In this document: piece by piece, positions 843-47,081 of the stretch | Layout: the number at the start of each line of letters is the position of its first letter | How positions within the stretch are numbered: position 1 is the first letter of the stretch | Virus record (IMG/VR): IMGVR_UViG_3300017991_000001 | Coordinates: 1 to 64,000 of that record | Length of the DNA: 64,000 nucleotides | Reading direction: 5' to 3' (one strand) | The notes under the pieces: model-generated | What the model was told of the DNA's origin: nothing | What the model saw: only the letters and a program-made list of their open reading frames with translations | Database searches by the model: none | Translations under genes and position numbers: made by a program

Positions 843-955
843 CATGCCCTCGAGCAATGAATTTCAGCGTCTAAATTACGCCTCAAAGCGCGTTACAATA
901 TACTACGCGTGACTGGCTTTCAGTCAGTTACTCTCCTGAACTACAACCTTCGGTA

Positions 956-1057
956 AATTCGCGTCAGGCCTGCGAGATACCCACCGCGCGCACAGGCGCG
1001 TTGGCAGGATAAGTGGCCGCGAAGGCATTGCCGTTACGCCGGAGCAATCTCCTGTAC
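956..1057 (+). ncRNA. tracrRNA-like scaffold copy 1 with anti-repeat for array 1
   Basis: Homologous to the copies at 4237, 5541 and 6167. Ends in TCTCCTGTAC (1048-1057), complementary to GTACAGGAGG of the array-1 repeat with one G.U pair. Confidence 0.85.
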
Positions 1058-1102
1058 CTACTGAACGTTGTGTTCATTTTCTCAGTTGTCGCAAGACATA
1101 GG

Positions 1103-1253
1103 GGCGGCCCCACGCGTACAGGAGGGTTTGGAAACGGAGGCAGGACAGACATTGTGCCGATTCGGCGGCCCCACGCGTACAGGAGGGTTTGGTTCACCAC
1201 GGCCTGCCAGCCCGCGAAATGCGCGGCGGCCACACGCGTACAGGAGGCTTGTG
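1103..1253 (+). CRISPR. CRISPR array 1 (mini-array): 3 repeats, 2 spacers of 32 nt
   Basis: GGCGGCCCCACGCGTACAGGAGGGTTTGG at 1103 and 1164; degenerate third copy at 1225; 61-nt period. Confidence 0.9.
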
Positions 1254-1270
1254 GACTCCCGGTAGCCGTC

Positions 1271-1351
1271 AACCACGCGCGCAAGGAAGCTCGGAAACAC
1301 GTGTTTCCGGGCCGGACACGTCGAGTCCGTGTGTGCGTGGTTTTTCGTTTT
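1271..1351 (+). promoter_or_regulatory. Palindrome/terminator-like structure between array 1 and the effector gene
   Basis: Perfect 18-bp palindrome CGGAAACACGTGTTTCCG (1292-1309), enclosed by AACCACGCGC / GTGCGTGGTT and followed by T-runs. Confidence 0.5.
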
Positions 1352-1373
1352 ACCATTCTTACAGGAGAGGAAC

Positions 1374-3362
1374 ATGGACGAGAAAAGCGCGATGGAAGAA
1401 GTGGCCAGGTTGGCCGAGGCAAACGCGGTGCGCATGGAAAAAACGGCGCGTTCTCCGCGCATCCAAGTGATGGAGTTCCGGTTTCCGACGCCGGAGGACT
1501 GGGTGAAGGGCATGCGTTATTTCAAAGCCTATGGGGCCAATATGAAGTGGTTGTTCGCCCAGGCGTCGATGTGTCTCAACCTTGCCGGCATACCCGGGTT
1601 CACGCCCAAGAAGAACCTCAACGCAACGGTCGACATGGCCCTGGCCGACGCGTTCATGAAGTTGCTGGGCGGTGAGGTGGTGAACGGAGACGGAAACGGG
1701 GACGGTAAGAAACGCGGTGCGGCTCTGTATGCCTTGCGCAAGGCCTGGATGGACCGGCAGGACGAGCTAGAGAAGGCCGAGAACGTCGGCTTCCGTTTCC
1801 CTTCCTGCATATGGGACGAGGCACGGATCTTCGTGTGGGGCCACTTGAAAAGGAAGGACCCCCGCATGAAACGACGCCACTGCGACCTGTCGGCGGCGGG
1901 CGAGCGCAAGGACGTCAACTACAACACGGAACTGTCACGCATCGTACTGCAGGCGTACGAGTGCCAAACGACCAAACGTGTGAAGTTCGCTGAGGAAACC
2001 GATCCCGTCTCGGGCGAGAAGATGCTGGTAGCCTACCTGGGCATCGTGAAGGGCGTGAGCACGCGGGTCATCCTCGACGGTTGGTTCGAGCGGCTGGTCA
2101 GGAAGGAGGTGATCGAGAACGGCAAACGCGTGATGAAGGTCGTGCGCGAGCGGGACCGCTTTGAGATGGAGCCGCGAGCCAAGGGCGTCGTGGAGAATAT
2201 CCTCTCCGGTGAATACACGCTGCGTCGGGGCGAGTTCTACTTCCGCAAGCGCCGCAGCAAGGGCGGGCCCCGCAAGCTACGTCCCTTCCTGGATCTTTGT
2301 TACGACCCTCATGCCAAACGCACTGCCCGCCAGCTTAAGAAGGAGGAAGAGGAGGGCGAGACCACCAAGCGTGGCATGCGCTACGCGGCGCTGTTCTTCC
2401 ACAAGACGGACGGCGTGGGTAAGGACGAAGGGCTTGTTTATTTCCCCCACCTGTCAACCGACATCACGACAAGCAAGGAGAAGTTGGACAAGTACCGGTT
2501 CTATTCCCCGCCCGTGAACAACATGATGGGTGTACTGCACGATATCCGGGCGCGGCGCAACGCCGTCGTCCACCGCAAGCGTTCGGCGCTCGGGGTTCGC
2601 GAGTTCCGCACCGCCATCAAGAAGAAGGAGAAGTTGTACACGTTGCGGCGGGAGAAGTTCATCACGAAGAACATGAACATCATGGCGAACGACTTCGTGC
2701 GCTGCCTGCGAAGCTGGAACGTGGGCAACGTGATCATGCCGTGCGTGCCCAAGAACATCGAGGTGATGGGCGAGTCGTTCCCGTGGGCCGCGTTCGTCGA
2801 TATCATGCACACCAAGTGTGACGACGCGGACATCATCTTCCTGACCGGCGACGCGCACCTGGAAGCGCTGCAGGCTGCGGCCAACGAGGAGACCGCCGCC
2901 ATCAGGGCACGTGATGATCTGGAGGACGAGGAGAAGGAACGGGCCATCAAGGTCATCAAGGAACGCACCAAGGCCCACAAGGAAATGCTCTCCGGCAACA
3001 TCTCGGAGCGCGCGGACACGCTCATCGAAACCATTGAGAAGAAACTCGAGGAGCGGGGTATGCGCAAGGAGGAGGACGAGGAGTCCCTTCTCGAAGAGGA
3101 AAGCAAGAGCAAGAAGAAGAGGAAACCCCGCAAGCGCGTGAAGCCGGTGCGGAAGGTCATGGTCAAGACGAAGGACGATGACGGCAGGACTGTGAAAAAA
3201 GACGCCAGCAAACTCCGCACGAAGACGCGCAAGCGTGCGGACCCCAAGGCGAAGCACGAGAAGTGCTGGGCTCGCCACAGGGGAGGACAGCAGGGCGAAG
3301 TCGAAATGAAGGTTTTCGAGCAGGAAGAGGCTAAGAGGAAAGACAGGAAATCAGGAGGATAA
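1374..3362 (+). CDS. Nuclease-dead TnpB/Cas12f-like type V effector with C-terminal charged extension (662 aa)
   Basis: RBS AGGAGAGG before ATG 1374. Cas12f-like wedge segment ILSGEYTLRRGEFYF...FLDLCYD. The RuvC-I position reads MRYAALFFH (no D). Arg/Lys-rich bridge helix, then KNMNIMANDFVRCLRSWNVGNVIMPCV (RuvC-II, no E) and FPWAAFVDIMHTKCDDADIIF. No Zn finger or RuvC-III. Flanked by CRISPR arrays. Confidence 0.8.
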   Translation: MDEKSAMEEVARLAEANAVRMEKTARSPRIQVMEFRFPTPEDWVKGMRYFKAYGANMKWLFAQASMCLNLAGIPGFTPKKNLNATVDMALADAFMKLLGGEVVNGDGNGDGKKRGAALYALRKAWMDRQDELEKAENVGFRFPSCIWDEARIFVWGHLKRKDPRMKRRHCDLSAAGERKDVNYNTELSRIVLQAYECQTTKRVKFAEETDPVSGEKMLVAYLGIVKGVSTRVILDGWFERLVRKEVIENGKRVMKVVRERDRFEMEPRAKGVVENILSGEYTLRRGEFYFRKRRSKGGPRKLRPFLDLCYDPHAKRTARQLKKEEEEGETTKRGMRYAALFFHKTDGVGKDEGLVYFPHLSTDITTSKEKLDKYRFYSPPVNNMMGVLHDIRARRNAVVHRKRSALGVREFRTAIKKKEKLYTLRREKFITKNMNIMANDFVRCLRSWNVGNVIMPCVPKNIEVMGESFPWAAFVDIMHTKCDDADIIFLTGDAHLEALQAAANEETAAIRARDDLEDEEKERAIKVIKERTKAHKEMLSGNISERADTLIETIEKKLEERGMRKEEDEESLLEEESKSKKKRKPRKRVKPVRKVMVKTKDDDGRTVKKDASKLRTKTRKRADPKAKHEKCWARHRGGQQGEVEMKVFEQEEAKRKDRKSGG

Positions 3363-3364
3363 CT

Positions 3365-4207
3365 GTGAACAAAATCAGACCCGCTGTCGTTCCACCCCCC
3401 GCGATCATGTACACCCCGACGGGGGCGGGATTGCCGGACACGCAGTTTAAGAGCGTACTAGCAGCCGTAAGCTCTGCGATCTGCGGAAGCTACAAGCGAC
3501 ACAAGAAGTTGGTGAGAGACACACTACACAAGCATGGACCGCTATTGAGCTGCATGGACCAGGAGCAGCGAGACACGCTGATGGAGTCCATCGAAGGGCA
3601 GGGCGTTACGTACAGGGAAGTGGATCGCGTACTTTCCTGCTACAGCGTGGTGCCTCGTTACATAGGCTTGGCGCCGGCACTGGTGGACAACAGCGCGGTA
3701 AGCGTGTTGTGGTGGAACAACCTTCCAAAGCGCGTCAAGCAGGACGCGTTGGCTGACAAGCTGGTACGCGTGAAGCGTGCCAACAGTTGGGTGCAGAAGA
3801 AGTTTTCGGACCTCACCCCGAAAGACGTGCGGCAGGTGTTCGATGTGGGTGACGGAAGCAAAGGGTACCTGCCCGTACGCACGCAGCATACTGCGCCGCG
3901 TGCCCGCAAAAGCGTGTACATGCAACCCGCGGGGCCGGTGTCGGTCAACGAGGACGACCCCAACAAGTTCCTCATCGAGGTCACCAGCAAAGGCAAGCGA
4001 GAAGTGGTGGCCATGTCCGAGCACGAGATGAAGTACACGCTCGGACAGGCGCGCGTGCTGACGGGAAGGAACGCGGTGGATTGGGACGCGGTCGAGAAGG
4101 AGCTGCGCGATTTAATCGCGACGTGGCGCGCGTCCAGGTCCAAGCATAAGGCCGTGTTGGCGACCTGCGCCGACGAAGTCGAGAAAATATTGGACGGCAA
4201 CGTGTAG
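3365..4207 (+). CDS. Hypothetical protein, operonic partner of the dead Cas12f-like effector (280 aa)
   Basis: GTG start 2 nt after the effector stop, with AGGAGG RBS; no recognisable motif. Confidence 0.8.
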   Translation: MNKIRPAVVPPPAIMYTPTGAGLPDTQFKSVLAAVSSAICGSYKRHKKLVRDTLHKHGPLLSCMDQEQRDTLMESIEGQGVTYREVDRVLSCYSVVPRYIGLAPALVDNSAVSVLWWNNLPKRVKQDALADKLVRVKRANSWVQKKFSDLTPKDVRQVFDVGDGSKGYLPVRTQHTAPRARKSVYMQPAGPVSVNEDDPNKFLIEVTSKGKREVVAMSEHEMKYTLGQARVLTGRNAVDWDAVEKELRDLIATWRASRSKHKAVLATCADEVEKILDGNV

Positions 4208-4236
4208 CTGAACGAAGCAGCGGTACGATGTGCGGA

Positions 4237-4338
4237 AATTCGCGTCAGGCCTGCGAGATGTCCGCCGCGCACACTGAGTGCGTTGGCAGGGTAAGTGGCC
4301 GTGAAGGCGCTTCGGCGCCGGATACGTCTTCCCTACAC
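4237..4338 (+). ncRNA. tracrRNA-like scaffold copy 2 with anti-repeat for array 2
   Basis: Stems CCTGC/GCAGG, GCGCAC/GTGCGT and GGCGC-TTCG-GCGCC. Anti-repeat TCTTCCCTACAC (4327-4338) pairs with GTATAGGGAAGA of the repeat. Confidence 0.88.
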
Positions 4339-4384
4339 ATCCGCATGTCGTACCGCTACTCTGTTTCTAACCCTACATGTTGGT

Positions 4385-5474
4385 GTCGCACCCACGCGTA
4401 TAGGGAAGATTGGACCCAATTTTAGATACTCGCTGCAGCGCCGTCGTCGCACCCACGCGTATAGGGAAGATTGGAGAAACGATTTGACTAGGCATGCGGA
4501 GTCGTCGTCGCACCCACGCGTATAGGGAAGATTGGGCGCCCAGCGCGTCCGCCACGTGTTCGCGCTCGTCGCACCCACGCGTATAGGGAAGATTGGAAAG
4601 CTCCCTCGAAGGCGTCGCCCAACAGGCCGTCGCACCCACGCGTATAGGGAAGATTGGGCTTACGCCGGCAAGCTCGGCATTGAGGGCCTGTCGCACCCAC
4701 GCGTATAGGGAAGATTGGCAGCGGCTGGACCGGCGACTCGGTCTGCCCCAGTCGCACCCACGCGTATAGGGAAGATTGGCGTATCATGAACAGGTCGCAC
4801 CCACGCGTATAGGGAAGATTGGCGGCTCGAGGTGTTCGCTACAGGAGCGTCGCACCCGCGCGTATAGGGAAGATTGGGCACCCTTCCCGCGAGTCGCGTG
4901 CTGCAGCACGTCGCACCCACACGTATAGGGAAGATTGGTCCTCCCTCAGCGTTTCCTCCGCTTTGCAGTCGTTGCACCCACGCAGATAGGGAAGATTGGA
5001 AGGGCCAACCAAAGGCACTGCCGGTCGCCAAGTCGCACCCACGCGTATAGGGAAGATTGGTTTTGGAGGCGAGCAACGCGGCGACGGGCAGCGTCGCGCC
5101 CACGCGTATAGGGAAGATTGGCTAAAGGATGTTGATCTCCTGTCGCACCCACGCGTATAGGGAAGATTGGATCGATAGGCGTAATTCCGGTTCAGGTGCC
5201 GTGTCGCACCCACGCGTATAGGGAAGATTGGGCCCCCGATCCCGAAATCGAAAAGACGGACCCGTCGCACCCACGCGTATAGGGAAGATTGGGCTTCGAT
5301 GTTCTGTGTCGTAGCCTTGAGCGGGTCGCACCCGCGCGTATAGGGAAGATTGGGTCCTTTTCCCGGACCGCCACGGGTTCGGGCGGTCGCACCCACGCGT
5401 ATAAGGAAGATTGGCCGTCAAGAATCGCCCCAACACCGCGTGTGCGTCGCACCCACGCACACGAGGAGGGTTGG
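4385..5474 (+). CRISPR. CRISPR array 2: 19 repeats, 18 spacers
   Basis: Repeat GTCGCACCCACGCGTATAGGGAAGATTGG (29 nt). Spacers mostly 32 nt, also 14, 26, 20 and 31. A degenerate last repeat at 5446 indicates + orientation. Confidence 0.98.
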
Positions 5475-5540
5475 GTCCTGGGTTCGTTGTCGCGCTTACG
5501 TGCTGGGAATGCATACAGACTACAGCGGTGGACACATGTA

Positions 5541-5638
5541 AATTCGCGTCAGGCCTGCGAGATGTCCGCCGCGCACACTGAGTGCGTTGGCAGGGTAAGT
5601 GGCCGTGAAGGTGCTTGCACCGGATACGTCTTCCCTAC
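5541..5638 (+). ncRNA. tracrRNA-like scaffold copy 3 with anti-repeat for array 3
   Basis: Near-identical to copy 2, with a compensatory hairpin GGTGC-TT-GCACC; anti-repeat TCTTCCCTAC at 5629-5638. Confidence 0.88.
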
Positions 5639-5680
5639 CATGTGTCATGCCGTTGTTCTCTTTATGGTCCATATGTTGGT

Positions 5681-6133
5681 GTCGCGCCCACGCGTATGGG
5701 GAAGGTTGGGCTTATGCACGCATCAGGGAGATCAGCGCACCGTCGCGCCCACGCGTATGGGGAAGGTTGGTCGTGGAGACGAGCAAAGCCGCGACGGGCG
5801 CCGTCGCGCCCACGCGTATGGGGAAGGTTGGTACGCCGAGTGCCTCGGACAACTGCGGGACAAGCCGCGCCTGCGCTTATAGGGAAGATTGGCCATCCCG
5901 CCTGGGGACAAATGGAGATTGCGTCGCGCCCACGCGTGTAGGGAAGGCTGGAAACTGTATGACCGTGTGGCGATCGGCCATGTATCGCGCCTACGCGTGT
6001 AGGGAAAGCTGGCTGCATCTGGCGTCAGATTTCATGCTGCGTAGGTAGGACCCACGCGTGTAGGGAAGGCTGGGCGCAGCTCGCCGTTATCGGAGCACGA
6101 AACCTGTTGAACCCACCCGCGTAAGAAGGCTGG
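5681..6133 (+). CRISPR. CRISPR array 3: 8 repeats, 7 spacers
   Basis: GTCGCGCCCACGCGTATGGGGAAGGTTGG at 5681, 5742 and 5803; progressively degenerate copies at 5864, 5923, 5984, 6045 and 6106. Confidence 0.95.
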
Positions 6134-6166
6134 ATCACCGAATAAATAGCAGTGCGGTATGTGGAG

Positions 6167-6272
6167 AATCGCGTCAGGCCTGCGAGATGTCCGCCGCGCG
6201 CACAGGCGCGTTGGCAGGATAAGTGGCCGTGAAGGCGCTTCGGCGCCGGATACGCTCTCCTCACACATACGT
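6167..6272 (+). ncRNA. tracrRNA-like scaffold copy 4 with anti-repeat for array 4
   Basis: Homologous scaffold. Anti-repeat GCTCTCCTCACACATACGT (6254-6272) pairs with ACGTA(C/T)G(C/T)GAGGAGGGC of the array-4 repeats. Confidence 0.88.
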
Positions 6273-6316
6273 CCGCATGTCGTGCTGCTGGTTAATCCAT
6301 ACCTCTGTATCTTGGC

Positions 6317-6772
6317 GTCAAACCTACGTACGCGAGGAGGACTGGCTAACGCGCCCAGAATGAGAGAATACCATGATGTCAAACCCATGTACGCGAGGAG
6401 GACTGGACGTTCACCGTCGCTATCTAAAGCGCCTTGCGGTCAAACTCACGTACGCGAGGAGGGTTGGGCTACCCTCAGCTACCGGCGGACGAGGACACGG
6501 TCAAACCCACATACGCGAGGAGAGCTGGGCCCACCTAGGACGGGCGGGCGGATTGCAACCGTCAAACCCACGTACGCGAGGAGGGCTGGTGATAAGCGAG
6601 GAGAACTAAGACCGAGGCAAGGTCAAACCCACGTATGCGAGGAGGGCTGGGCTGGCGTGGATGATGGTCGTTACCAGGATACGTCAAACCCACGTATGTG
6701 AGGAGGGCTGGCCTCGGCATGAACTGCTGCCTGCGTACTCGGCGTCGAACCCACGTACGCGAGGAGGGTTGG
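6317..6772 (+). CRISPR. CRISPR array 4: 8 repeats, 7 spacers of 32 nt
   Basis: Consensus GTCAAACCCACGTACGCGAGGAGGGCTGG at 6317, 6378, 6439, 6500, 6561, 6622, 6683 and 6744; exact 61-nt period. Confidence 0.95.
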
Positions 6773-6832
6773 CGTCGCTTGATTTCTTTCAGCGGGACCA
6801 TGCAATCGAATTAACAAGCGAACCCGCAAGGG

Positions 6833-6857
6833 GAGGTGCCAGCGGCGCCTTCTTTTA
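6833..6857 (+). terminator. Probable terminator ending the CRISPR locus
   Basis: GAGGTGCC-AGC-GGCGCCTT followed by CTTTT, convergent with the minus-strand operon. Confidence 0.55.
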
Positions 6858-6858
6858 G

Positions 6859-7551
6859 CTATTCGGTCATGTAACCCGCGTCCAGCATCATCTCCCGATA
6901 CATCTTCAGCGTGTGAGCGATCTGCTCTTCGTCCAGCACGTCCTCCCAGGCGCCGGGCTCGCCCTTCGTCTCGGAGATGTGCTTGCCCCTGAGCTGGGTC
7001 TTCATGTCAGCGGTGTCCTCATGCAGCGAGTCGGTGAAGGCCTTCACCGTGACGGGGTCGACCTCGTGGGCGATGCGCTTCACGTCTTCCGGCATGGGAG
7101 GCAGCCCGAGGTACTCGCGGATGCGGTCCACCGCGGCGGGGAGGTCGTTGTAGACGTCCTCGTACTTGAGCATCAGGATGGCGGGGTGCTTCTTCATATA
7201 GAAGTACTCGGTGCTCATCTTCTTCGGGTAGCGCAGGCGCTTCTTGTAGGGCGTGCGTCCGAACTTGGGCAGGCGCTGCAGCGAGGCCATCACGTCCAGC
7301 GGGTTGCGGTAGGTGTAGATGATGAAGGCCCGGCGGACGATGTCGAAGGGCGGCTCGTAGTGGTGGACCTTGACAACCCGCCAGCGCGTGCTGTTGAGCT
7401 GCTGGCGAAGCTCCTCGTCGACCTGGGCGGCCGAGGTGCCGGCGTAGTCGTAGGGGTGGCCCCGGGCTTCCAGGAGCTTCTGGACCGTCATGTAGGACAG
7501 GGTTGATCCGGTTCGATACATTCCGTTGCAGATAACGAACTGCTTGTGCAC
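6859..7551 (-). CDS. Sulfotransferase (Sulfotransfer_1/3-like)
   Basis: 5'-PSB loop GMYRTGST, VVKVH, 3'-PB YRNPLDVMAS, LKYED; GTG start inferred. Confidence 0.85.
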   Translation of the reverse strand: MHKQFVICNGMYRTGSTLSYMTVQKLLEARGHPYDYAGTSAAQVDEELRQQLNSTRWRVVKVHHYEPPFDIVRRAFIIYTYRNPLDVMASLQRLPKFGRTPYKKRLRYPKKMSTEYFYMKKHPAILMLKYEDVYNDLPAAVDRIREYLGLPPMPEDVKRIAHEVDPVTVKAFTDSLHEDTADMKTQLRGKHISETKGEPGAWEDVLDEEQIAHTLKMYREMMLDAGYMTE

Positions 7552-8270
7552 GGTTCCACCTCTGGGATCTCGTACCCGGCGTGCTTCATCATCCGACCAC
7601 ACTGCGCCACGCATGCCCTTATGGTAGCGGCTGATAGGTGTTTACGCCAGGTGTCAGGTTTGCCCAAATCGTCGGAAATGTGGTGGTCGCGCACGTTTGT
7701 GATGTTCTTGATGGTGTCGTTGGGCATCGTGTCGGCGTGGGCCTTGACCACCTCAGCCGAGTGCCGGCGGGCGATCTCCCTGGCTTCGGGCAGCGTCACG
7801 TGCAGGTCCAGGAAGTTGGAGACCATGCAGACGACGCGGGGCACGTCCAGGATCATCTCCTCGTACTTGATCATCAGGCAGGGCTTCCAGTGCAGCTGGT
7901 CGAAGTAGTCATCCTCGTAACGGTCCCAGCCGTCGGGGATGTACTCGCCCCACTCGCCGGTCTGGGCCGTGCAGCGCTTCTGGGCGGAGGCGGCTATGTC
8001 CAGGGGGTTGCGGTAGGTGAACAGGAACCTGGCCTCCCTCATGACGTCGACCTGCCGGCCGCGCAGCACGTAGAAGTGCACCTTGGCCAGCATGGGAGGA
8101 GGCGTCGGGTAGGTGATCACGAAGCGGCCATAGCTGTCGCGGAGGCAGTACGGGGTGGACTCAATCAGCTCCACGTCGCCGAAGTTCAGCTCCAAGAGCT
8201 CACGTGCGATGTTGTAGACCAGCGTGGACCCCGAGCGGTACATCCCGTTGCAGACCACGAATCGACTCAC
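7488..8270 (-). CDS. Sulfotransferase, tandem paralogue
   Basis: GMYRSGST, LAKVH, YRNPLDIAAS, IKYEE; GTG start inferred. Confidence 0.85.
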   Translation of the reverse strand: MSRFVVCNGMYRSGSTLVYNIARELLELNFGDVELIESTPYCLRDSYGRFVITYPTPPPMLAKVHFYVLRGRQVDVMREARFLFTYRNPLDIAASAQKRCTAQTGEWGEYIPDGWDRYEDDYFDQLHWKPCLMIKYEEMILDVPRVVCMVSNFLDLHVTLPEAREIARRHSAEVVKAHADTMPNDTIKNITNVRDHHISDDLGKPDTWRKHLSAATIRACVAQCGRMMKHAGYEIPEVEPCTSSSLSATECIEPDQPCPT

Positions 8271-9073
8271 AGCGCCCCCCTCTCTGTTTTGCTCATCAAC
8301 TCCTTGGCCCGATCCGGTTCCATCTCGCCCATGGCGACCATGAGCAGGCGCGCGTAGTTCTTCTGCCGTTCGCTGGCGTTCTCGTAGGCCCTCTTGCCAA
8401 TATAGACGGTCACGCCGTAGACCAGCAAGCCCATGATCAGGATGACCCCGATCACCGTGATCACCGCCGACATGGGCCACATGTTGACGTCGCGCCCGGC
8501 GCGCATCTCGGTCTGGAGCGTGGTTTGCATCTTCGTGAGCTTGTTCGACAAGCCCACTTGCCCCGAGGCTGTGGCGTCTGCCTGTCCCGACATGTGGCCG
8601 ACCTTGGTGTTGATATCGGACAGCGCCTTCATCGTGTTGTCCAGCTTCGCCTCCATCTTGTTGGTGACGTTGACGTTGGCCTCGAACTTGGCGTTGATCG
8701 TGTTCTCCAGGCTCGCCATGGCTGTCATGGTATTGGTCAGCTTCGTGTCGATGTCGGCTTGCATCTTATTGTCGATCTTGGCCTCCAAGTTAATCAGGCC
8801 CTTTAGCGCCACCTCCATCTTCTGGAGCTGCGCCACGATGTGGCCGGAGAGCTGGTTGCTGTTGGAGGACATGTCGGCCCGCACGCGGGCGGCGGTGTCC
8901 TCCACGATCTTGTCCGTGTCCACCTTCTCCACCGCTATTTCCGGTGCCGGCATCGAAATCTCAGGTTTGTGGTCGATGATCGTCGGGGCCATCTTGGTCT
9001 TGTTGTCGGCGATGCAGCCGGTCAGCCATATCAACAAAATCAACAACGGCATCAATGACTTGAGCTTGGGCAT
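8267..9073 (-). CDS. Lipoprotein with coiled coil and C-terminal TM helix (unimolecular spanin-like)
   Basis: Signal peptide with lipobox LTGC, long heptad-like helix, TM segment AVITVIGVILIMGLLVYGVTVYI. Confidence 0.55.
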   Translation of the reverse strand: MPKLKSLMPLLILLIWLTGCIADNKTKMAPTIIDHKPEISMPAPEIAVEKVDTDKIVEDTAARVRADMSSNSNQLSGHIVAQLQKMEVALKGLINLEAKIDNKMQADIDTKLTNTMTAMASLENTINAKFEANVNVTNKMEAKLDNTMKALSDINTKVGHMSGQADATASGQVGLSNKLTKMQTTLQTEMRAGRDVNMWPMSAVITVIGVILIMGLLVYGVTVYIGKRAYENASERQKNYARLLMVAMGEMEPDRAKELMSKTERGAL

Positions 9074-41392: not shown

Positions 41393-42451
41393 ATGCTGAA
41401 TCCACGACTTTTCAAGTCGTTGGCCGATCGCTTCGGGAAGGTGAGGATCGCCAACGAAGGGGAGCGCATGCTCGTCAAGGAGGTGCCCGACGCCAAGCGT
41501 GAGGGCAGGACGCGCGAGATCCCCGAGACGTCCGGTGAGTACTACCGGGTCAACTGCCCCTACTGTCAGGACACCAAGGGTCGGCTGTGGATCAACCACC
41601 GCTGGAACACAAAGACGGCCGACGGCCGTCCGTGGGGCTGGTGGCTGGCGGTGTGCTACAACGAGAACTGCAACCTGAGCAGGCTGCGGGACGAGCTGGA
41701 GCTGTACCTGGTGGACAAGCCCACGATCAAGCGGGCCCACAAGGAGGCGTTCCAGAAGACGGTGCGGTTCAAGGAGGTGGCGTTGCCGGGGCGGTGCGTG
41801 CCGGTCTCGGGGCTGGAACCGGGACATCCGGCGAGGGCCTACCTCGCCAGGCGCAACTTCGACCCCTACGAGCTGGTGAAGCTTTTTGCCGTCCATTATT
41901 GCGTGGACGTGCCGGAGGACCCCGACGGGTTCGTGCCCGACACCAAGTGGCACGCGCGCATGGTGCGGGGGCGGCTGGTCATACCCATCTACCGGCTGGG
42001 CAAGCTGGTGGGCTGGCAGACCCGGGCCATCGACGACGAGTCGCATCCGAAGTACTACACGATGCCGGGCCTGAAGAAGCAGCACCTCATCTACAACGGC
42101 GACATGTGCCGCACCTACGACTTCGGCGTGGTGGTCGAGGGCGCCACCGACGTGTGGCGCGTGGGACCGCGCGGCGGCGGGGTGCTGGGCAAGGAGATCA
42201 GCTACTACCAGCGCCAGCTCATCTCGGCGTACTGGGGGGACGGGGCCATGTGCCTGCTGTTGGACCCCGAGGCGCTCGAGGACATCGACAAGGTCAACAA
42301 GATGATCAACCTCCGCGACGGCTTCAAGTGGGGCGCGTTCGCGTTGAGGCTCGCGCCGGGCCAGGACCCCGGCGGTATGGATCGATCCGATTTGTGGAGA
42401 CTCATATCAAGCTATGCTCGCACCAGGGGCATCCAACTCCTCTCTGTGTGA
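41393..42451 (+). CDS. DNA primase
   Basis: CPYC...CYNENC Zn finger, GRLVIPI, GWQTR, TOPRIM VVEGATD, DPG. Confidence 0.88.
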   Translation: MLNPRLFKSLADRFGKVRIANEGERMLVKEVPDAKREGRTREIPETSGEYYRVNCPYCQDTKGRLWINHRWNTKTADGRPWGWWLAVCYNENCNLSRLRDELELYLVDKPTIKRAHKEAFQKTVRFKEVALPGRCVPVSGLEPGHPARAYLARRNFDPYELVKLFAVHYCVDVPEDPDGFVPDTKWHARMVRGRLVIPIYRLGKLVGWQTRAIDDESHPKYYTMPGLKKQHLIYNGDMCRTYDFGVVVEGATDVWRVGPRGGGVLGKEISYYQRQLISAYWGDGAMCLLLDPEALEDIDKVNKMINLRDGFKWGAFALRLAPGQDPGGMDRSDLWRLISSYARTRGIQLLSV

Positions 42452-45400
42452 TCTGGACCACGTGGCGCTTGACCGGTTTCCGCTGACGGAGACCTACGAG
42501 CGCGCGAAGACGGAGTGGGGCTGTTTGAAAGAGGAGGAGGTGGCACGCACGCTCTTGTGGGGCGGCGGGATGGCGTCGTGGCTCTCCGTGGCCGACGGCA
42601 AGGACCGCGTCTCGCCGGTGCGCTGGGTGACGGGCACCCACATCGGCAACGGCACGCCGGGGCCCTATCCCCATTACGACGTGATGGTGGTGGGCAAGAT
42701 GCCCGGCGCCGAGGAGATCATGAAGGGCCGGGTGCTGTGCGGCAAGTCGGGGCAGCTGTTGTTGAAGGCCGCCATGGCGCGGGGCTGCCACTACCTGATC
42801 AGCAACGCCTACGGCACCAACGTGTGCCGCTTCGCGCCGCCCGACGGGAGCAGCAACCTCAAGCCCGCCCATGTCAAGGACTGCATGCCCATGCTCGCCC
42901 AGGAGCTGGCGATCAACAATCCCAAGTACGTGTTGCTATTGGGTACCGACGCGGTGAAGGCCTTCTTCGGCAACAAGTTCAACCTGTCGAAGGTGCGCAG
43001 CCACTGTTTCGTGCTGCCCACCCCGTACGCGCTGGGCGAGGAGCCGACCGACGCCGACATCCTGACCAACGAGGCCTACGACGCCGGCGTCAAGATCTAC
43101 GCCACCATCCACCCCGCGGCCGTGCTGCGCGAGATCGGGTTGCAGGCGGGCCTGGAGCGGGACCTGGAGCGGTTCGCCGGCCTGGTGTCCGGCGCGTTCC
43201 GCGGCAACAGCACCATCCAGCAGGACACGTACTACCACTACGTCCACCAGCACGCGCCCCTGAAGCACATCATCGACCAGATCCTCGCCGCCGGCATACG
43301 CGAGATCGCGGTCGACTGCGAGTGGGGCGGCACCTTCCCCACGGGTTCCCTGCGCACCATCCAGTTCTGCTGGGCGCCGAGGGAGGTGTGCGTCGTGATC
43401 CTGCGGCGCCAGCACATGCACGACGCCCAGCAACCGGGCGAGCGGGCGAAGATGATGATGGAGCTCAAGCGGCTCTTCCACCATCCCGGTATGAAGATCG
43501 TGGGCCACAACATCCGCGCTGACGCCAAGTGGCTGGCGCTGGAGGACCTGCCGATCATGGATCGGGTCAGCTTCGATACGATGCTGGCCGACCACATCCT
43601 GAACGAGAACGCCGAGCACGGGTTGGAGGAGTGCGCGGTCCGCATGACGGACATGGGCCGGTACGACCTGCCGCTGAAGAAGTGGCTCTCGGCCAACCCG
43701 CAGCCCAAGCACGCCGGCTTCGCCGAGGTGCCGGACGACATCCTGCACCCCTACTGCGCCTGCGACCCCGACGCGACCTTCCGGCTGATCGAGCCGCTGC
43801 GCAAGCGCCTGGCCCAGCCCGACCTGTCGAGGGTGCGCCACTGCTACGAGAAGATCGTGCTGCCTTGCATGCAGCCCGTGCACGAGATCGAGATGAACGG
43901 GTTGGCCGTGGACCAGGACCGCATGGAGGGCCTGGTATGGACCTACGACACCAAGAAGCGCGAGCTGATCGATCACCTGCGCGACCTCATCGGCGACCCG
44001 TACTTCAACTTCCGCTCCTACCCCCAAGTCTCCCGCCTGCTGTTCGGTAAGATCCACGAGGGTGGGCTGGAGCTGGTCCCGTTGAAGACCACGGAGAAGC
44101 CGGCCCGCATGTGGGACGACGTGCGCCACGTGCCGGAGCACGAGCTGGAGCGCCTCAACCCGTCCACGGACTCCGAGACGCTGAAGCATCTTGCCGCCGA
44201 GTACCCGGACGTGCCCATCGTCACGGCGCTGGCGGACCTGCGGCTGGTGGACCAGGTGTCCAAGAGTTTCATGCGGACGCCCGAGGTCGATCCCTACACG
44301 GGCGACGAGATCTACGAGTCGGGCCTGGTCGGCCACGTCGACCCGGACGGGCGCGTGCGGACATCCATCAATCAGATGTCCGAGACGGGCAGGTGGAAGA
44401 GTTCAGACCCCAACCTACAGAATCTTCCGAACCGGCAGGACGCCGAGCTGAAGCGGGTGATGGGGGAGGGTGTCCACAAGATACGCAGTTGCTTCATCGC
44501 CGACGAGACGGTGGAGGCCGTCGAGCGGTTGGAGCAGGGCTGGGTGCTGGTGGAGGCCGACTTCTCGTCCGCCGAAATCTTCACGCTCGGTTACCTGTCC
44601 GACTGCCCGAAGCTGTTGATGGACGCGAAGAGCGACCTGCACGGTCGCGGCGCGGTGAACTACTTCGGGGCGCCCAGGTGGGACGGGTTCGAGCAGGGCA
44701 TCAAGCCCCCGGAGGAGTGGTTGAAGGAGCACAAGCACCTTAGGGTGGGCGCCAAGTCGGTGAACTTCGGCATCCCCTATCAGCGTGGCGCCAAGGCCGT
44801 GGCGCGCGAGGTCACCAAGGCCACCAACGGCAAGGTGTCCTGCGACACGATGCAGGCGCAGGGGTACATCAACGGGTTCTACGAGACGTACCCCGAAGTC
44901 GACAACTTCGTGGAGATGGCGAAGGCTTCCGTGATCTTCCCGGGCTATCTGGACCAGCCCTTCGGCAGACGCAGGCGCTTCTCCTCCTTCGCGGACGATT
45001 CCGCCATCGCGGCACAGCAGCGCGAGGCGGTGAACTTCCCCATTCAGAGCACGGTGGCGGACCTGCTCAACACCGCCGTCTACAACCTCTGGATGTGGCG
45101 CAACGCCTACCCGGGCGAGGCCGAGTACCGGATCGTGCTGTGCATCCATGACTCGGTCTTCCTGGAAGTGCGCGGGCCGCACGTGCCCGTGGTCGTCGAC
45201 ACCATACTCCCGGCCTGCATGCGGCACGGGGCCGTGGCTCCCATGTGGAAGCCCGAGTGTTACAAGCTGTCGAACCGTGGAAAACCGAAACGTGGAGAAC
45301 CGTTTTACACGAAACCGACGCGACCATTCTCGTTGGACATCGACGTGGAGTTGATGACGAGATGGGGATCGGAACCGGACCCGGACGAGCTGGTGCGCAG

Positions 45401-45452
45401 GGGCGTGCCGGTGAACTGGGTCGAGGCAAACGTGAAGAAAGGTGCACAGTAA
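42414..45452 (+). CDS. Family A DNA polymerase with N-terminal UDG-like and 3'-5' exonuclease domains
   Basis: UDG4-like MVVGKMPG..G.SG / TIHPAAVLR; exonuclease VDCE, GHNIRAD, YCACD; polymerase TGRWKSSDPNLQN, ADFSSAE, KSVNFGIPY, NFPIQS, IHDS. Start uncertain. Confidence 0.95.
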   Translation: MLAPGASNSSLCDLDHVALDRFPLTETYERAKTEWGCLKEEEVARTLLWGGGMASWLSVADGKDRVSPVRWVTGTHIGNGTPGPYPHYDVMVVGKMPGAEEIMKGRVLCGKSGQLLLKAAMARGCHYLISNAYGTNVCRFAPPDGSSNLKPAHVKDCMPMLAQELAINNPKYVLLLGTDAVKAFFGNKFNLSKVRSHCFVLPTPYALGEEPTDADILTNEAYDAGVKIYATIHPAAVLREIGLQAGLERDLERFAGLVSGAFRGNSTIQQDTYYHYVHQHAPLKHIIDQILAAGIREIAVDCEWGGTFPTGSLRTIQFCWAPREVCVVILRRQHMHDAQQPGERAKMMMELKRLFHHPGMKIVGHNIRADAKWLALEDLPIMDRVSFDTMLADHILNENAEHGLEECAVRMTDMGRYDLPLKKWLSANPQPKHAGFAEVPDDILHPYCACDPDATFRLIEPLRKRLAQPDLSRVRHCYEKIVLPCMQPVHEIEMNGLAVDQDRMEGLVWTYDTKKRELIDHLRDLIGDPYFNFRSYPQVSRLLFGKIHEGGLELVPLKTTEKPARMWDDVRHVPEHELERLNPSTDSETLKHLAAEYPDVPIVTALADLRLVDQVSKSFMRTPEVDPYTGDEIYESGLVGHVDPDGRVRTSINQMSETGRWKSSDPNLQNLPNRQDAELKRVMGEGVHKIRSCFIADETVEAVERLEQGWVLVEADFSSAEIFTLGYLSDCPKLLMDAKSDLHGRGAVNYFGAPRWDGFEQGIKPPEEWLKEHKHLRVGAKSVNFGIPYQRGAKAVAREVTKATNGKVSCDTMQAQGYINGFYETYPEVDNFVEMAKASVIFPGYLDQPFGRRRRFSSFADDSAIAAQQREAVNFPIQSTVADLLNTAVYNLWMWRNAYPGEAEYRIVLCIHDSVFLEVRGPHVPVVVDTILPACMRHGAVAPMWKPECYKLSNRGKPKRGEPFYTKPTRPFSLDIDVELMTRWGSEPDPDELVRRGVPVNWVEANVKKGAQ

Positions 45453-47081
45453 ATGGGTTACAACGACGAAGTGCCGTCCGGCCAGGGGCTGGATGGTCTG
45501 CCCGGCTTTTTCATCAAGAAGTCAGGCGCCCCGCACACGACGCAGTTCCTGAACTTCGGCAATCCGACCGTCTTCAGGATACTGCCGGAGATCAACGTCA
45601 ACGGGCATGAGGTGCCCTGGCGGCTGGGTCCGGGGCAGGGCGAGTTCTCGAACTGGATCAAGGGTTTGAGGGTCGCCACCAAGATGGGGGTGAACGGCAA
45701 GTTCACCTGCATCGCCAACGTGAAGGGCAAGCCCCCTCGGGAGCTTGGCCCCATCGACGTCTTTGCCAATGCCGTACACAAGGCCGTCGAGCGCAACAAG
45801 CGCGCCTTCCCGGAGGAGTGGGAGGACTGGGTGACGTATCTCCCCAAAACCGGCATCAAGCTGGGCATCCCGGACTATCACGCCGGCGTGCAGGGCCTCC
45901 TGTTCGAGCACGGAGGCAAGCAGTTCATGGACGAGAAGGGTAATCCGCAGCCCAGGCACCCGGTCATCCTGTTGATGAAGACCAGTGCCCGGTTCAAGCT
46001 GCAGGACATGTGCAACGTGGAGGTGCCGGGCTACTCGGGCGCCCCCGAGGATTACAACCGGCGCTATCCGATCGGGGACGCCTTCTCCCTCGGGGGTGGC
46101 CACCTGCTCAAGATCTTCCCGGTGCCGGACGACGGCTCCACGCGGGCCCACTACGACATCGAGGTGTTGCAGGAGGTGGTGCCCATTCCGAAGTCGGTGT
46201 CCATGGAATGGCGTCCTTGGGACGAGATCCTGGACTACCTGGACGAGGCCCAGCAGGTTAACCTCGTCGTCAACCACTTCCCGCCGGAGGTGGTGGACTT
46301 CGCGCTCAGCCAGGGACAGTACGGACATCTCGTGCCGCCCCACGTGAAGGGCGCGTTCGAGCAGATGCGTTTGCGGATGCAGGGTGGCGGCGGCGTGGCC
46401 GTGCAGCCGTACGGCACGCAGGGGTATCAGCAACCTCAGCAGCCCCAGCAGCCCCAGCAGCCCCAGCAGCCGCAGGGGCAGATCCAGGCGGCTCCGGTAC
46501 CCGCCGAGGTACCCGCCGTGGACTCCCCCGAGTTGAGGCAGAGCGTGGGCACGCAGGCAACTCAGCCGGCTGCCACGCCTCCCGCCACCGGACCCATCGT
46601 CAACTTCGGGGAGCAGAACTATACGCAGCCCTCGCCCACGGCGAGTCCTGCGCAGCCCGCCCAGCCCGCCCAGCCGGCGCAGCCCGCACAACCCGTGCAG
46701 CCTGCCCAACCGGCGCAACCGGCGCAGCCCGCTCAGCCCACCCAACCGGTCAGGGCTGTAAACTTCGGTGGTGCGGAGGCACAGACTCCGATGCCGGCAC
46801 CGGAATCTCAGGCCACTACGGCTGCACCACCGCCTCCGCAGCCGCCCAACGACCCGGACGTGCCGCCGCCTCCACAGGTGGCGCCCGCGCCCAACGCCGC
46901 ACCCGCGGCGGCAGCAGCCACGCCTGAGCAGTTCAACCAGCCTGTGGCCGGGGGTCAGGCTCCGCAGCAACCCATCGGCGATCCCGCGCAGACGCAGAAC
47001 GCGCAGGCCGATACGCTCGCCCGTCTCCGGGCGGCGCGTGAGCAGGTCGACGGACAGGCTCCGCAGCAACCGCAGCAGTAG
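45453..47081 (+). CDS. Probable ssDNA-binding/replication protein with a long Gln/Pro-rich tail
   Basis: Lies between polymerase and RecA; FRILP motif typical of phage SSBs; ~230-aa low-complexity tail. Confidence 0.5.
   Translation: MGYNDEVPSGQGLDGLPGFFIKKSGAPHTTQFLNFGNPTVFRILPEINVNGHEVPWRLGPGQGEFSNWIKGLRVATKMGVNGKFTCIANVKGKPPRELGPIDVFANAVHKAVERNKRAFPEEWEDWVTYLPKTGIKLGIPDYHAGVQGLLFEHGGKQFMDEKGNPQPRHPVILLMKTSARFKLQDMCNVEVPGYSGAPEDYNRRYPIGDAFSLGGGHLLKIFPVPDDGSTRAHYDIEVLQEVVPIPKSVSMEWRPWDEILDYLDEAQQVNLVVNHFPPEVVDFALSQGQYGHLVPPHVKGAFEQMRLRMQGGGGVAVQPYGTQGYQQPQQPQQPQQPQQPQGQIQAAPVPAEVPAVDSPELRQSVGTQATQPAATPPATGPIVNFGEQNYTQPSPTASPAQPAQPAQPAQPAQPVQPAQPAQPAQPAQPTQPVRAVNFGGAEAQTPMPAPESQATTAAPPPPQPPNDPDVPPPPQVAPAPNAAPAAAAATPEQFNQPVAGGQAPQQPIGDPAQTQNAQADTLARLRAAREQVDGQAPQQPQQ
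46428..46748 (+). repeat. Coding 9-bp tandem repeats (QQP and AQP units)
   Basis: CAGCAGCCC-type units at ~46428-46475 and GCNCARCCN-type units at ~46650-46748. Confidence 0.85.

Follow-up and report, generated by a model that had tools for sequence, protein, structure and literature searches.

Bacterial dCas12f homologs that lie beside CRISPR arrays and are not sigma-E-linked have been noted bioinformatically (PMC13472631, section 5, Extended Data Fig. 1a,b), and phages are known to carry TldR, a TnpB-derived RNA-guided DNA binder with an inactivated, truncated RuvC domain (10.1101/2023.11.30.569447; PMC13418256). Here we compare these and other described systems with a phage locus at positions 936–6857 (+ strand) of IMG/VR record IMGVR_UViG_3300017991_000001. 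In this locus, four guide-RNA cassettes flank a two-gene operon (662 + 280 amino acids), each cassette combining a CRISPR array with a conserved, structured RNA element and an anti-repeat of 10 nt. The window, by which we mean the whole stretch of DNA analyzed, is the first 64 kb of the source contig (Ga0180434_10000025; 211,084 bp). We read the locus as a phage-borne, nuclease-dead, type V-like dual-RNA-guided DNA-binding system, the effector of which would be a highly diverged TnpB/Cas12f-fold protein, and assign this reading a probability of about 0.58. In silico support for it comes from the anatomy of the locus, from RNA pairing and covariation, from the fold class of the effector, from conservation in a second phage and from the absence of cas1 and cas2 in the regions searched.

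The array-linked bacterial dCas12f proteins resemble the effector described here in their small Cas12f/TnpB fold and in a truncated C terminus that lacks part of the RuvC site; they too have a covarying structured guide element upstream of the array, and a role in repression was proposed for them (PMC13472631). They are chromosomal, whereas our locus resides on jumbo phages and its effector shows no detectable Cas12f sequence similarity. It further differs from them in having four (or, in the second phage, two) cassettes of trans-activating CRISPR RNA (tracrRNA) plus array, each with its own anti-repeat and closing stem, a partner gene, and a 29/32 repeat–spacer geometry. The dCas12f–sigma-E systems (PMC13472631; 10.1101/2025.06.10.658880) also place a dead Cas12f-fold protein in an operon with a dedicated partner to be delivered to DNA, there an ECF sigma factor with a C-terminal extension; the partner here has no sigma-70 match. 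Unlike our locus, they use chimeric single guides, have mostly lost their arrays and are found on Bacteroidota chromosomes. TldR, in some cases encoded by prophages, shares the phage setting, yet it employs one omega-RNA-like guide against a fixed fliC or oppA promoter target and has no array, tracrRNA or spacer bank. Cas12m (type V-M) is compact and accompanied by arrays, as here, and protects by tight DNA binding and transcriptional silencing instead of cutting double-stranded DNA (PMC11013384; PMC10442227), but it keeps a non-canonical RuvC site, uses a CRISPR RNA (crRNA) without a tracrRNA and is found in cellular genomes or on plasmids.

Canonical Cas12f (type V-F) provides the best structural matches and is similar in size (400–700 amino acids), in its dual tracrRNA:crRNA guide and in the position of the spacer 3' of the repeat. 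It differs in its active Asp-Glu-Asp (D-E-D) triad, its zinc-finger TNB domain, its single tracrRNA and the cas1/cas2/cas4 genes that usually accompany it. The repeats of canonical Cas12f systems are about 36 nt long. CasPhi (Cas12j) and Cas-lambda are active nucleases that work with crRNA alone (for Cas12j, see PMC9917002). Like our effector, these are compact type V proteins with arrays on huge phages and no adaptation genes, but they have neither tracrRNA cassettes nor a partner gene. Finally, in the CRISPR-associated transposons of Cas12k, Tn7-like genes lie beside a dead effector; here we found no Pfam match to tnsB, tnsC or tniQ among 68 open reading frames (ORFs) of the window or in hits precomputed for the flanking sequence of both phages.

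We file the locus among the nuclease-dead TnpB/Cas12-derived RNA-guided DNA binders, without demonstrable membership of Cas12m, TldR or dCas12f, because sequence tests fail and there is no sigma factor, Tn7 gene or zinc finger. None of these three has multiple tracrRNA + array cassettes with putative excision stems, or this partner. An earlier note on this DNA had found the architecture unfamiliar as a whole; this is too strong a claim, since dead Cas12f beside arrays in bacteria (PMC13472631) and TldR in phages had already been reported.

Organization of the locus

Genes on the source contig include the phage hallmarks large terminase, family-A polymerase (PolA), SbcCD, helicases and a tRNA, which agrees with the phage origin proposed in the earlier note. 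The G+C content of the window is 62%. All features of the locus are on the + strand. It opens with the tracrRNA-like element of cassette 1 (936–1077), composed of a scaffold (956–1040) and an anti-repeat (1048–1057) between two closing-stem arms (936–956 and 1058–1077), and continues with CRISPR array 1 (1103–1253; three repeats, two spacers). A terminator-like hairpin with a U run (1327–1350) separates this array from ORF1, the effector gene (1374–3362; 662 amino acids), which has a good ribosome-binding site and a product, denoted P0001, identical to the called JGI protein. ORF2, the partner gene (280 amino acids), follows at 3365–4207.

The other three cassettes lie downstream of the operon. 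The element of cassette 2 (4210–4365; arms 4210–4237 and 4339–4365, scaffold 4236–4319, anti-repeat 4326–4335) precedes array 2 (4385–5474), the longest, with 19 repeats and 18 spacers. Cassette 3 has its element at 5512–5665 (arms 5512–5539 and 5638–5665, scaffold 5540–5621, anti-repeat 5628–5637) and its array at 5681–6133 (eight repeats, the last of them decayed, and seven spacers). Cassette 4 is made up of an element at 6140–6298 (arms 6140–6166 and 6271–6298, scaffold 6166–6247, anti-repeat 6254–6263) and an array at 6317–6772 (eight repeats, seven spacers). The array positions and counts given in the earlier note (3, 19, 8 and 8 repeats; 34 spacers) all hold. A strong hairpin followed by UUCUUUU (6826–6857; minimum-free-energy fold) is likely where transcription of the whole locus terminates; directly next to it lies a convergent gene for a sulfotransferase.

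Upstream of the locus, the terminator of the preceding gene (817–838) is followed by an AT-richer stretch (861–935; 60% A+T at 861–900), which is a weak candidate for the promoter of cassette 1; a sigma-70 scan found no promoter in this stretch. Cassettes 2–4 would be read through from the operon, because no cassette other than the first is preceded by an A+T-richer region.

Upstream RNA elements covary with their own arrays

A 20-nt word of the scaffold core occurs exactly four times in the 64 kb, always on the + strand (at 959, 4240, 5544 and 6169), compared with a mean of 0.02 in shuffled sequence (0/100 shuffles reached four). The scaffold cores (∼85 nt) are 89%–99% identical across the four copies over 64–77 nt. 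Their consensus fold has 48 pairs, six of which show compensatory changes on both sides, for instance a G-C pair replaced by A-U in the central hairpin and a C-G pair replaced by U-A in the hairpin with the UUCG loop. No further array or scaffold copies were found elsewhere in the window, and a search of Rfam at E ≤ 1 was negative for the locus of either phage, CRISPR-DR families included.

Directly after the last scaffold hairpin comes the 10-nt anti-repeat, which is complementary to positions 17–26 of the repeat of its own array (14–23 in cassette 1). The helix was kept in all 37 repeats scored, with 10/10 pairs in 25 of them, 9/10 in nine and 8/10 in three; in cassette 1, the anti-repeat forms 10/10 pairs with all three repeats. 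When cassettes 2 and 4 are compared, four helix pairs have changed on both sides, three of them from U-A to C-G and one from C-G to U-A. The scaffold of cassette 3 was copied from cassette 2 (99% identity), and its repeats changed A to G twice, both times giving G·U; variants deeper in array 3 remain paired through G·U or G-C. The unpaired 5' half of the repeats varies without pairing constraint. When scored by duplex energy, the own repeat was the best partner for cassettes 1, 2 and 4 and for cassette a of the second phage (four of six cassettes).

Because the repeat changes are compensated or wobble-compatible, we take these data as strong evidence for four tracrRNA:crRNA pairs, in which the upstream elements would be tracrRNA genes that each pair with their own crRNAs. 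This bears out the four tracrRNA + CRISPR modules of the earlier note. Three nucleotides and then the spacer remain after the helix, so the guide would lie 3' of the scaffold:repeat duplex, as it does in TnpB and Cas12 guides.

We also detected a long-range closing stem, absent from the earlier note, that encloses every scaffold: ∼20 nt upstream of the scaffold pair with ∼20 nt after the anti-repeat. The stems are 17, 24, 22 and 24 bp long in cassettes 1–4, those of the second phage measure 16 and 13 bp, and the arm sequence differs in each cassette. A stem as good appeared in one of 500 shuffles for cassette 1 and in none for cassettes 2, 3 and 4; taking all six cassettes of both phages, each of which has the stem, 0–9 of 500 shuffles were as stable. 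The stems may be excision sites for an RNase III-type enzyme. From the end of the 3' arm to the first repeat, there are 25, 19, 15 and 18 nt in cassettes 1–4, respectively. The "42–46-nt leader" of the earlier note is therefore not a plain leader, since its first ∼20 nt form the 3' arm of the closing stem and about 20–37 nt follow. As an account of the upstream element as a whole, a plain leader was rejected given the scaffold and the anti-repeat covariation.

Effector protein and its fold

An exhaustive phmmer search of 1.84 billion representative proteins returned one relative of the effector, P0002 (575 amino acids; 27% identity, E 9e-20), encoded by the second phage. A tblastn search with the effector core against 50,697 phage genomes gave nothing, and in a word-index search with the two-sequence alignment, Lys/Glu-rich words drowned out everything else; from about residue 500, the effector consists of a Lys/Glu-rich C-terminal tail. 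No sequence match to Cas12f/TnpB models (Pfam OrfB_IS605 and Cas12f1-like_TNB) or to solved chains was found at E ≤ 10.

Structure comparisons pointed consistently to one fold class. For P0001, all ten family sets of structure neighbors in the ESM Atlas were TnpB/Cas12f (TM-score by hit 0.56–0.65, 300–380 residues aligned). P0002 was likewise assigned to TnpB/Cas12f by structure, with a feature score of 0.94 to TnpB-type clusters. A Foldseek search of the Protein Data Bank (PDB) with an AlphaFold2 model of the P0002 core had only Cas12f, dCas12f, TnpB, Cas12g or Cas12p among its top 20 matches (E 1.5e-4 to about 1e-2, ∼170 columns; 4.5–5.6 Å for the Cas12f/TnpB rows), including the dCas12f entries 9n9c and 9n9m. 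These three sources are partly independent, and all use low-confidence models. On evidence that is at the level of the fold only, the effector and P0002 appear to share a TnpB/Cas12f-like fold, which would be the fold of a type V effector. The Cas12f-like effector of the earlier note thus stands by fold (ESM Atlas and Foldseek) and fails as a member of Cas12f by sequence, every such test having been negative.

The predicted order of elements, beta1-beta2-beta3, long helices, beta4, helix and beta5, is that of the RNase H/RuvC topology. Beta1 reads MRYAALFF in P0001 and RSAYVYIK in P0002, and beta4 reads NVIMPCV and NLSLFAL, respectively, so neither homolog has an acidic residue on these two predicted RuvC strands. 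Neither protein has a RuvC-III segment or CxxC pairs of the kind expected in the zinc-finger TNB domain, which in Cas12f lies between RuvC-II and RuvC-III; no RD.NAA-type motif is conserved between the two, and the chain after beta5 is only a Lys/Glu-rich charged helix. This mapping of RuvC residues combines secondary structure with motif reading. It suggests that the D-E-D triad has been lost and that the effector is likely, if not provably, RuvC-inactive. The absence of the RuvC Asp and Glu, the zinc finger and RuvC-III reported in the earlier note holds on this strand and motif reading, but "dead" is not secured by models of such low confidence.

A related locus in a second phage

P0002 is encoded on a phage contig of ∼186–198 kb recovered from several samples (L002–L008). 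This phage is distantly related to that of the window: it has 59% G+C and shares a few other genes with it at 37%–66% identity. The order of its locus, namely cassette, effector, partner and cassette, follows that of the window phage. Scaffold and array a (L002 9305–9889; nine clear repeats) precede the effector gene (L002 10001–11728; 575 amino acids) and the partner gene (L002 11715–12386; 223 amino acids), and scaffold and array b (L002 12498–13066; 10 repeats) follow. The arrays have a period of 61 (28 + 33). Their scaffold is shorter than that of the window and has no sequence relationship to it, and it again comes with a long closing stem and a terminal anti-repeat. Cassette a has the same geometry of 10 bp + 3 nt in a helix of different, unrelated sequence, with CCAUCCCCAC pairing with GUGGGGAUGG. 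The repeats fold at −11 to −14 kcal/mol, whereas those of the window fold weakly (−3.6 to −6.7 kcal/mol).

Two irregularities were noted in these arrays. Array a contains two double-length "spacers" (69 and 67 nt) with decayed repeat remnants (L002 9609–9861), and array b in L008 has an extra partial unit (8618–8667), in which a portion of the spacer before it is repeated. No third lineage emerged when metagenome, genome and viral contigs were scanned for the effector and the partner (for the effector in viral and metagenome contigs, among the matches listed).

Spacers and adaptation

Repeats in the window are 29 nt long with a period of 61, and the 34 internal spacers are exactly 32 nt long in 29 cases. 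A 29-nt repeat with a 32-nt spacer is the geometry of type I-E arrays. All four arrays share the strand of the genes, and every spacer has its repeat on the 5' side, an arrangement consistent with type V arrays. Leader-proximal repeats are identical and distal repeats are decayed, with array 3 decaying toward its 3' end, and the last repeat of array 2 retains a 3' half like that of the repeats in arrays 1 and 4. Together, these patterns suggest polarized growth of the arrays from the scaffold side.

The Pfam families of Cas1, Cas2, Cas4 and Cas6 had no match at E ≤ 1e-5 among the 68 other ORFs of the window (the other 147 kb of the contig being unexamined), in keeping with the earlier note, which saw no cas1/2/4/6 in the 64 kb. 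Other cas genes, such as the cas3 and Cascade genes of type I-E, were also absent from these ORFs. Adaptation genes were likewise missing from the 10 kb upstream of the window start, as seen in other assemblies, and from precomputed hits within 10 kb on either side of the second-phage locus. We speculate that spacers are added by host Cas1–Cas2, as the match of the 29/32 geometry to type I-E and the lack of adaptation genes suggest.

Sampled words of the locus were present in seven DNA runs, from 2018 and 2021; a look for RNA-seq runs gave none. In four DNA runs, the contigs matched the locus at ≥99% with two exceptions (one in X6 and one in X7), and no new spacers were seen among the locus contigs of these four runs. 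The only array polymorphism observed was a variant in run X4, in which a contig joins 4750 to 4794 without the short unit 4751–4793 that carries a 14-nt spacer. The two exceptional contigs, ∼150 nt each and with unrelated flanks, resemble 5779–5813 (24 nt of spacer and 11 nt of the next repeat) with a 90%–95% match and two 1-nt gaps; this is probably a chance resemblance in G+C-rich DNA, though it could reflect a relative of the target.

Two spacers, at 5061–5092 in array 2 and 5771–5802 in array 3, are identical at 25 of 32 positions and look like variants of one target sequence. A C at the + strand 3' end of the spacer is found in 18 of 34, above the expectation from base composition, and may be a base derived from a protospacer adjacent motif, a shifted repeat boundary or chance. 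No self target was found in 74 kb (the 64-kb window plus 10 kb upstream).

Proposed mechanism and alternatives

We infer nuclease loss, closing-stem processing, binding-only action, target class and adaptation route as follows. The locus would be transcribed on the + strand, and each cassette would yield a tracrRNA with about 85 nt of conserved protein-binding scaffold, probably freed from a longer precursor by host RNase III-type cleavage in the 13–24-bp closing stem. The 10-nt anti-repeat at the 3' end of the scaffold would pair with repeat positions 17–26, leaving 3 nt and the 32-nt spacer as a 3' guide. The effector with its tracrRNA:crRNA may then bind complementary double-stranded DNA; it probably binds rather than cuts its targets, because the DNA-cutting residues are absent from the predicted structure. 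Interference could come from a block to transcription or replication, as with Cas12m and TldR, or from recruitment of the co-translated 280-amino-acid partner, and the targets would most likely be competing mobile elements or host genes. Spacers would probably be supplied by host Cas1–Cas2, given that the phage encodes no Cas1–Cas2 nearby.

Several results weigh against this reading. First, the spacers, which the earlier note had proposed to search against viral and host genomes, gave no target in the sequences searched: not in the window, the 10 kb upstream, the 21.7 kb of the second phage or 50,697 phage genomes, not in an exact-pattern scan of viral contigs (three spacer starts and a degenerate pattern of the related spacer pair), and not in a scan of genome contigs with the degenerate pattern of that pair only. 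Active spacer uptake was not seen either, since four further assemblies, made from four different samples, have the locus, arrays included, without a single base change. Second, comparison of the effector with Pfam, NCBIfam, PADLOC, PHROGs and PDB sequences was blank, even for sub-regions and at E ≤ 10. An hhalign comparison with an alignment of InsQ-type TnpB gave a probability below 1%, which shows only that the InsQ-type TnpB subfamily is too distant; this alignment was built from viral InsQ relatives, the search with Escherichia coli InsQ having returned only near-identical sequences. Third, the AlphaFold2 models are poor (predicted local distance difference test [pLDDT] of 41.7 for full-length P0001 and 38.1 for the P0002 core, both from a two-sequence alignment), and the Foldseek TM-scores are low (0.2–0.3) and cover only about 170 columns, so that the mapping of catalytic residues is not secured by a confident superposition. 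The AlphaFold and Foldseek check that the earlier note had suggested came out divided, with the P0002 core retrieving Cas12f/TnpB and the full-length P0001 model nothing meaningful. In addition, an alternative register would keep an invariant Asp (FLDLCY and FLDVSY in the two proteins) as RuvC-I; in this register, the Glu position is still His or Lys and RuvC-III is still absent. Finally, cassette b of the second phage has only 6–7 anti-repeat pairs.

ORF2, the partner gene, starts 2 nt past the stop codon of ORF1, is translationally coupled to it, and is conserved with the effector in both phages (25% identical, E 1e-16), with invariant acidic residues such as a Glu-Asp-Asp (E-D-D) cluster. 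These properties, and 34 varied spacers that resemble an immune memory more than a regulatory set, would suit a destructive form of the same RNA-guided complex, in which the dead effector finds the target and the partner or a recruited host factor damages the DNA, much as type I systems recruit Cas3 and Cas12k recruits a transposase. We regard this as unlikely: searches of Pfam, PHROGs, NCBIfam, PADLOC and PDB assigned the partner neither to a nuclease nor to any other family.

We give still less credence to RNA-guided gene regulation, in which the complex would repress or activate host or phage promoters in the course of infection and the partner would serve as a transcription adaptor, in the manner of sigma-E with dCas12f or of the TldR repressors. 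Dead TnpB/Cas12f relatives are known to regulate genes, including in phages (PMC13472631; 10.1101/2023.11.30.569447). Several leader-proximal spacers in our arrays have a lower G+C content and look promoter- or start-site-like by eye, but no spacer matches the 64-kb window or the 10 kb upstream. Neither partner protein (280 and 223 amino acids) matches a sigma-70 or helix-turn-helix domain in Pfam, although a divergent sigma fold is conceivable, and the regulatory systems described so far have a single guide or a few, as opposed to 34 in polarized arrays.

Least probable are orphan type I-E-style arrays that use host Cascade and Cas1–Cas2, with the upstream element as their leader or promoter and the 662-amino-acid protein unrelated: the 29/32 geometry equal to that of type I-E, the stable hairpins of the second-phage repeats and a phage without adaptation genes in the regions searched would all be expected of them, but a leader needs neither a 10-nt segment that covaries with the repeat of its own array nor a scaffold with compensatory pairs or a closing stem, four repeat types in one phage and weakly folding window repeats poorly fit one Cas6e, and array, effector and partner are syntenic in both phages around a protein with the fold of an RNA-guided enzyme.

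If our reading of a nuclease-dead, dual-RNA-guided DNA-binding system is true, phages carry multi-guide, nuclease-free targeting with a memory of 34 spacers, beyond what is found with Cas12j, Cas-lambda and TldR. The effector family, to which just two of about 1.8 billion representative proteins are known to belong, is invisible to all sequence profiles tried and very rare, and would thus mark an RNA-guided lineage missed by profile-based CRISPR surveys. The cassette design, in which every array has its own tracrRNA, an anti-repeat that co-evolves with it and a putative excision stem alongside, would amount to natural orthogonal guide scaffolds for one protein, and the conserved partner might represent a new type of effector or adaptor. 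For tool building, the locus offers a natural putative DNA binder of ∼500 residues with dual-RNA guides and an apparent tolerance to changes in the repeat:anti-repeat helix. A more far-reaching proposal, which we put forward tentatively and consider doubtful as a whole, is that of a new CRISPR subtype confined to jumbo phages, in which a RuvC-less TnpB-fold effector, arrays of type I-E size filled by the Cas1–Cas2 of the host and duplicating cassettes, each excised by cleavage in its own closing stem, would deliver a hitherto undescribed partner to the DNA of rival phages or of the host, as an adaptive weapon of the phage on the lines of "CRISPRi plus effector."

Neighboring genes

Other assemblies extend beyond the start of the contig, so the window start is an assembly break. 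Of the 11 genes in the 10 kb upstream of it (L079 1–10000), most are large and lie on the + strand (812/841, 419, 404, 348 amino acids and others), and none has a Pfam match on record. Downstream, the locus is adjoined convergently by two genes with sulfotransferase domains (6862–7614 and 7491–8480, both on the − strand), an unusual cargo for a phage.

Among the 68 ORFs of the window, one matched the Acb2/Tad1 hairpin domain of the anti-CBASS/anti-Thoeris sponge family (E 3.7e-6), another matched PADLOC mad3 (E 2e-35) and two matched mad8. The family-A DNA polymerase (42414–45449, + strand) has an N-terminal domain of the uracil-DNA-glycosylase superfamily ahead of its 3'-5' exonuclease domain. 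Beyond it, the 9-nt tandem repeats CAGCCCGCC and CAGCAGCCC at 46428–46749 lie inside an ORF of 542 amino acids (45453–47081), in which they encode a Pro/Ala/Gln-rich repeat region.

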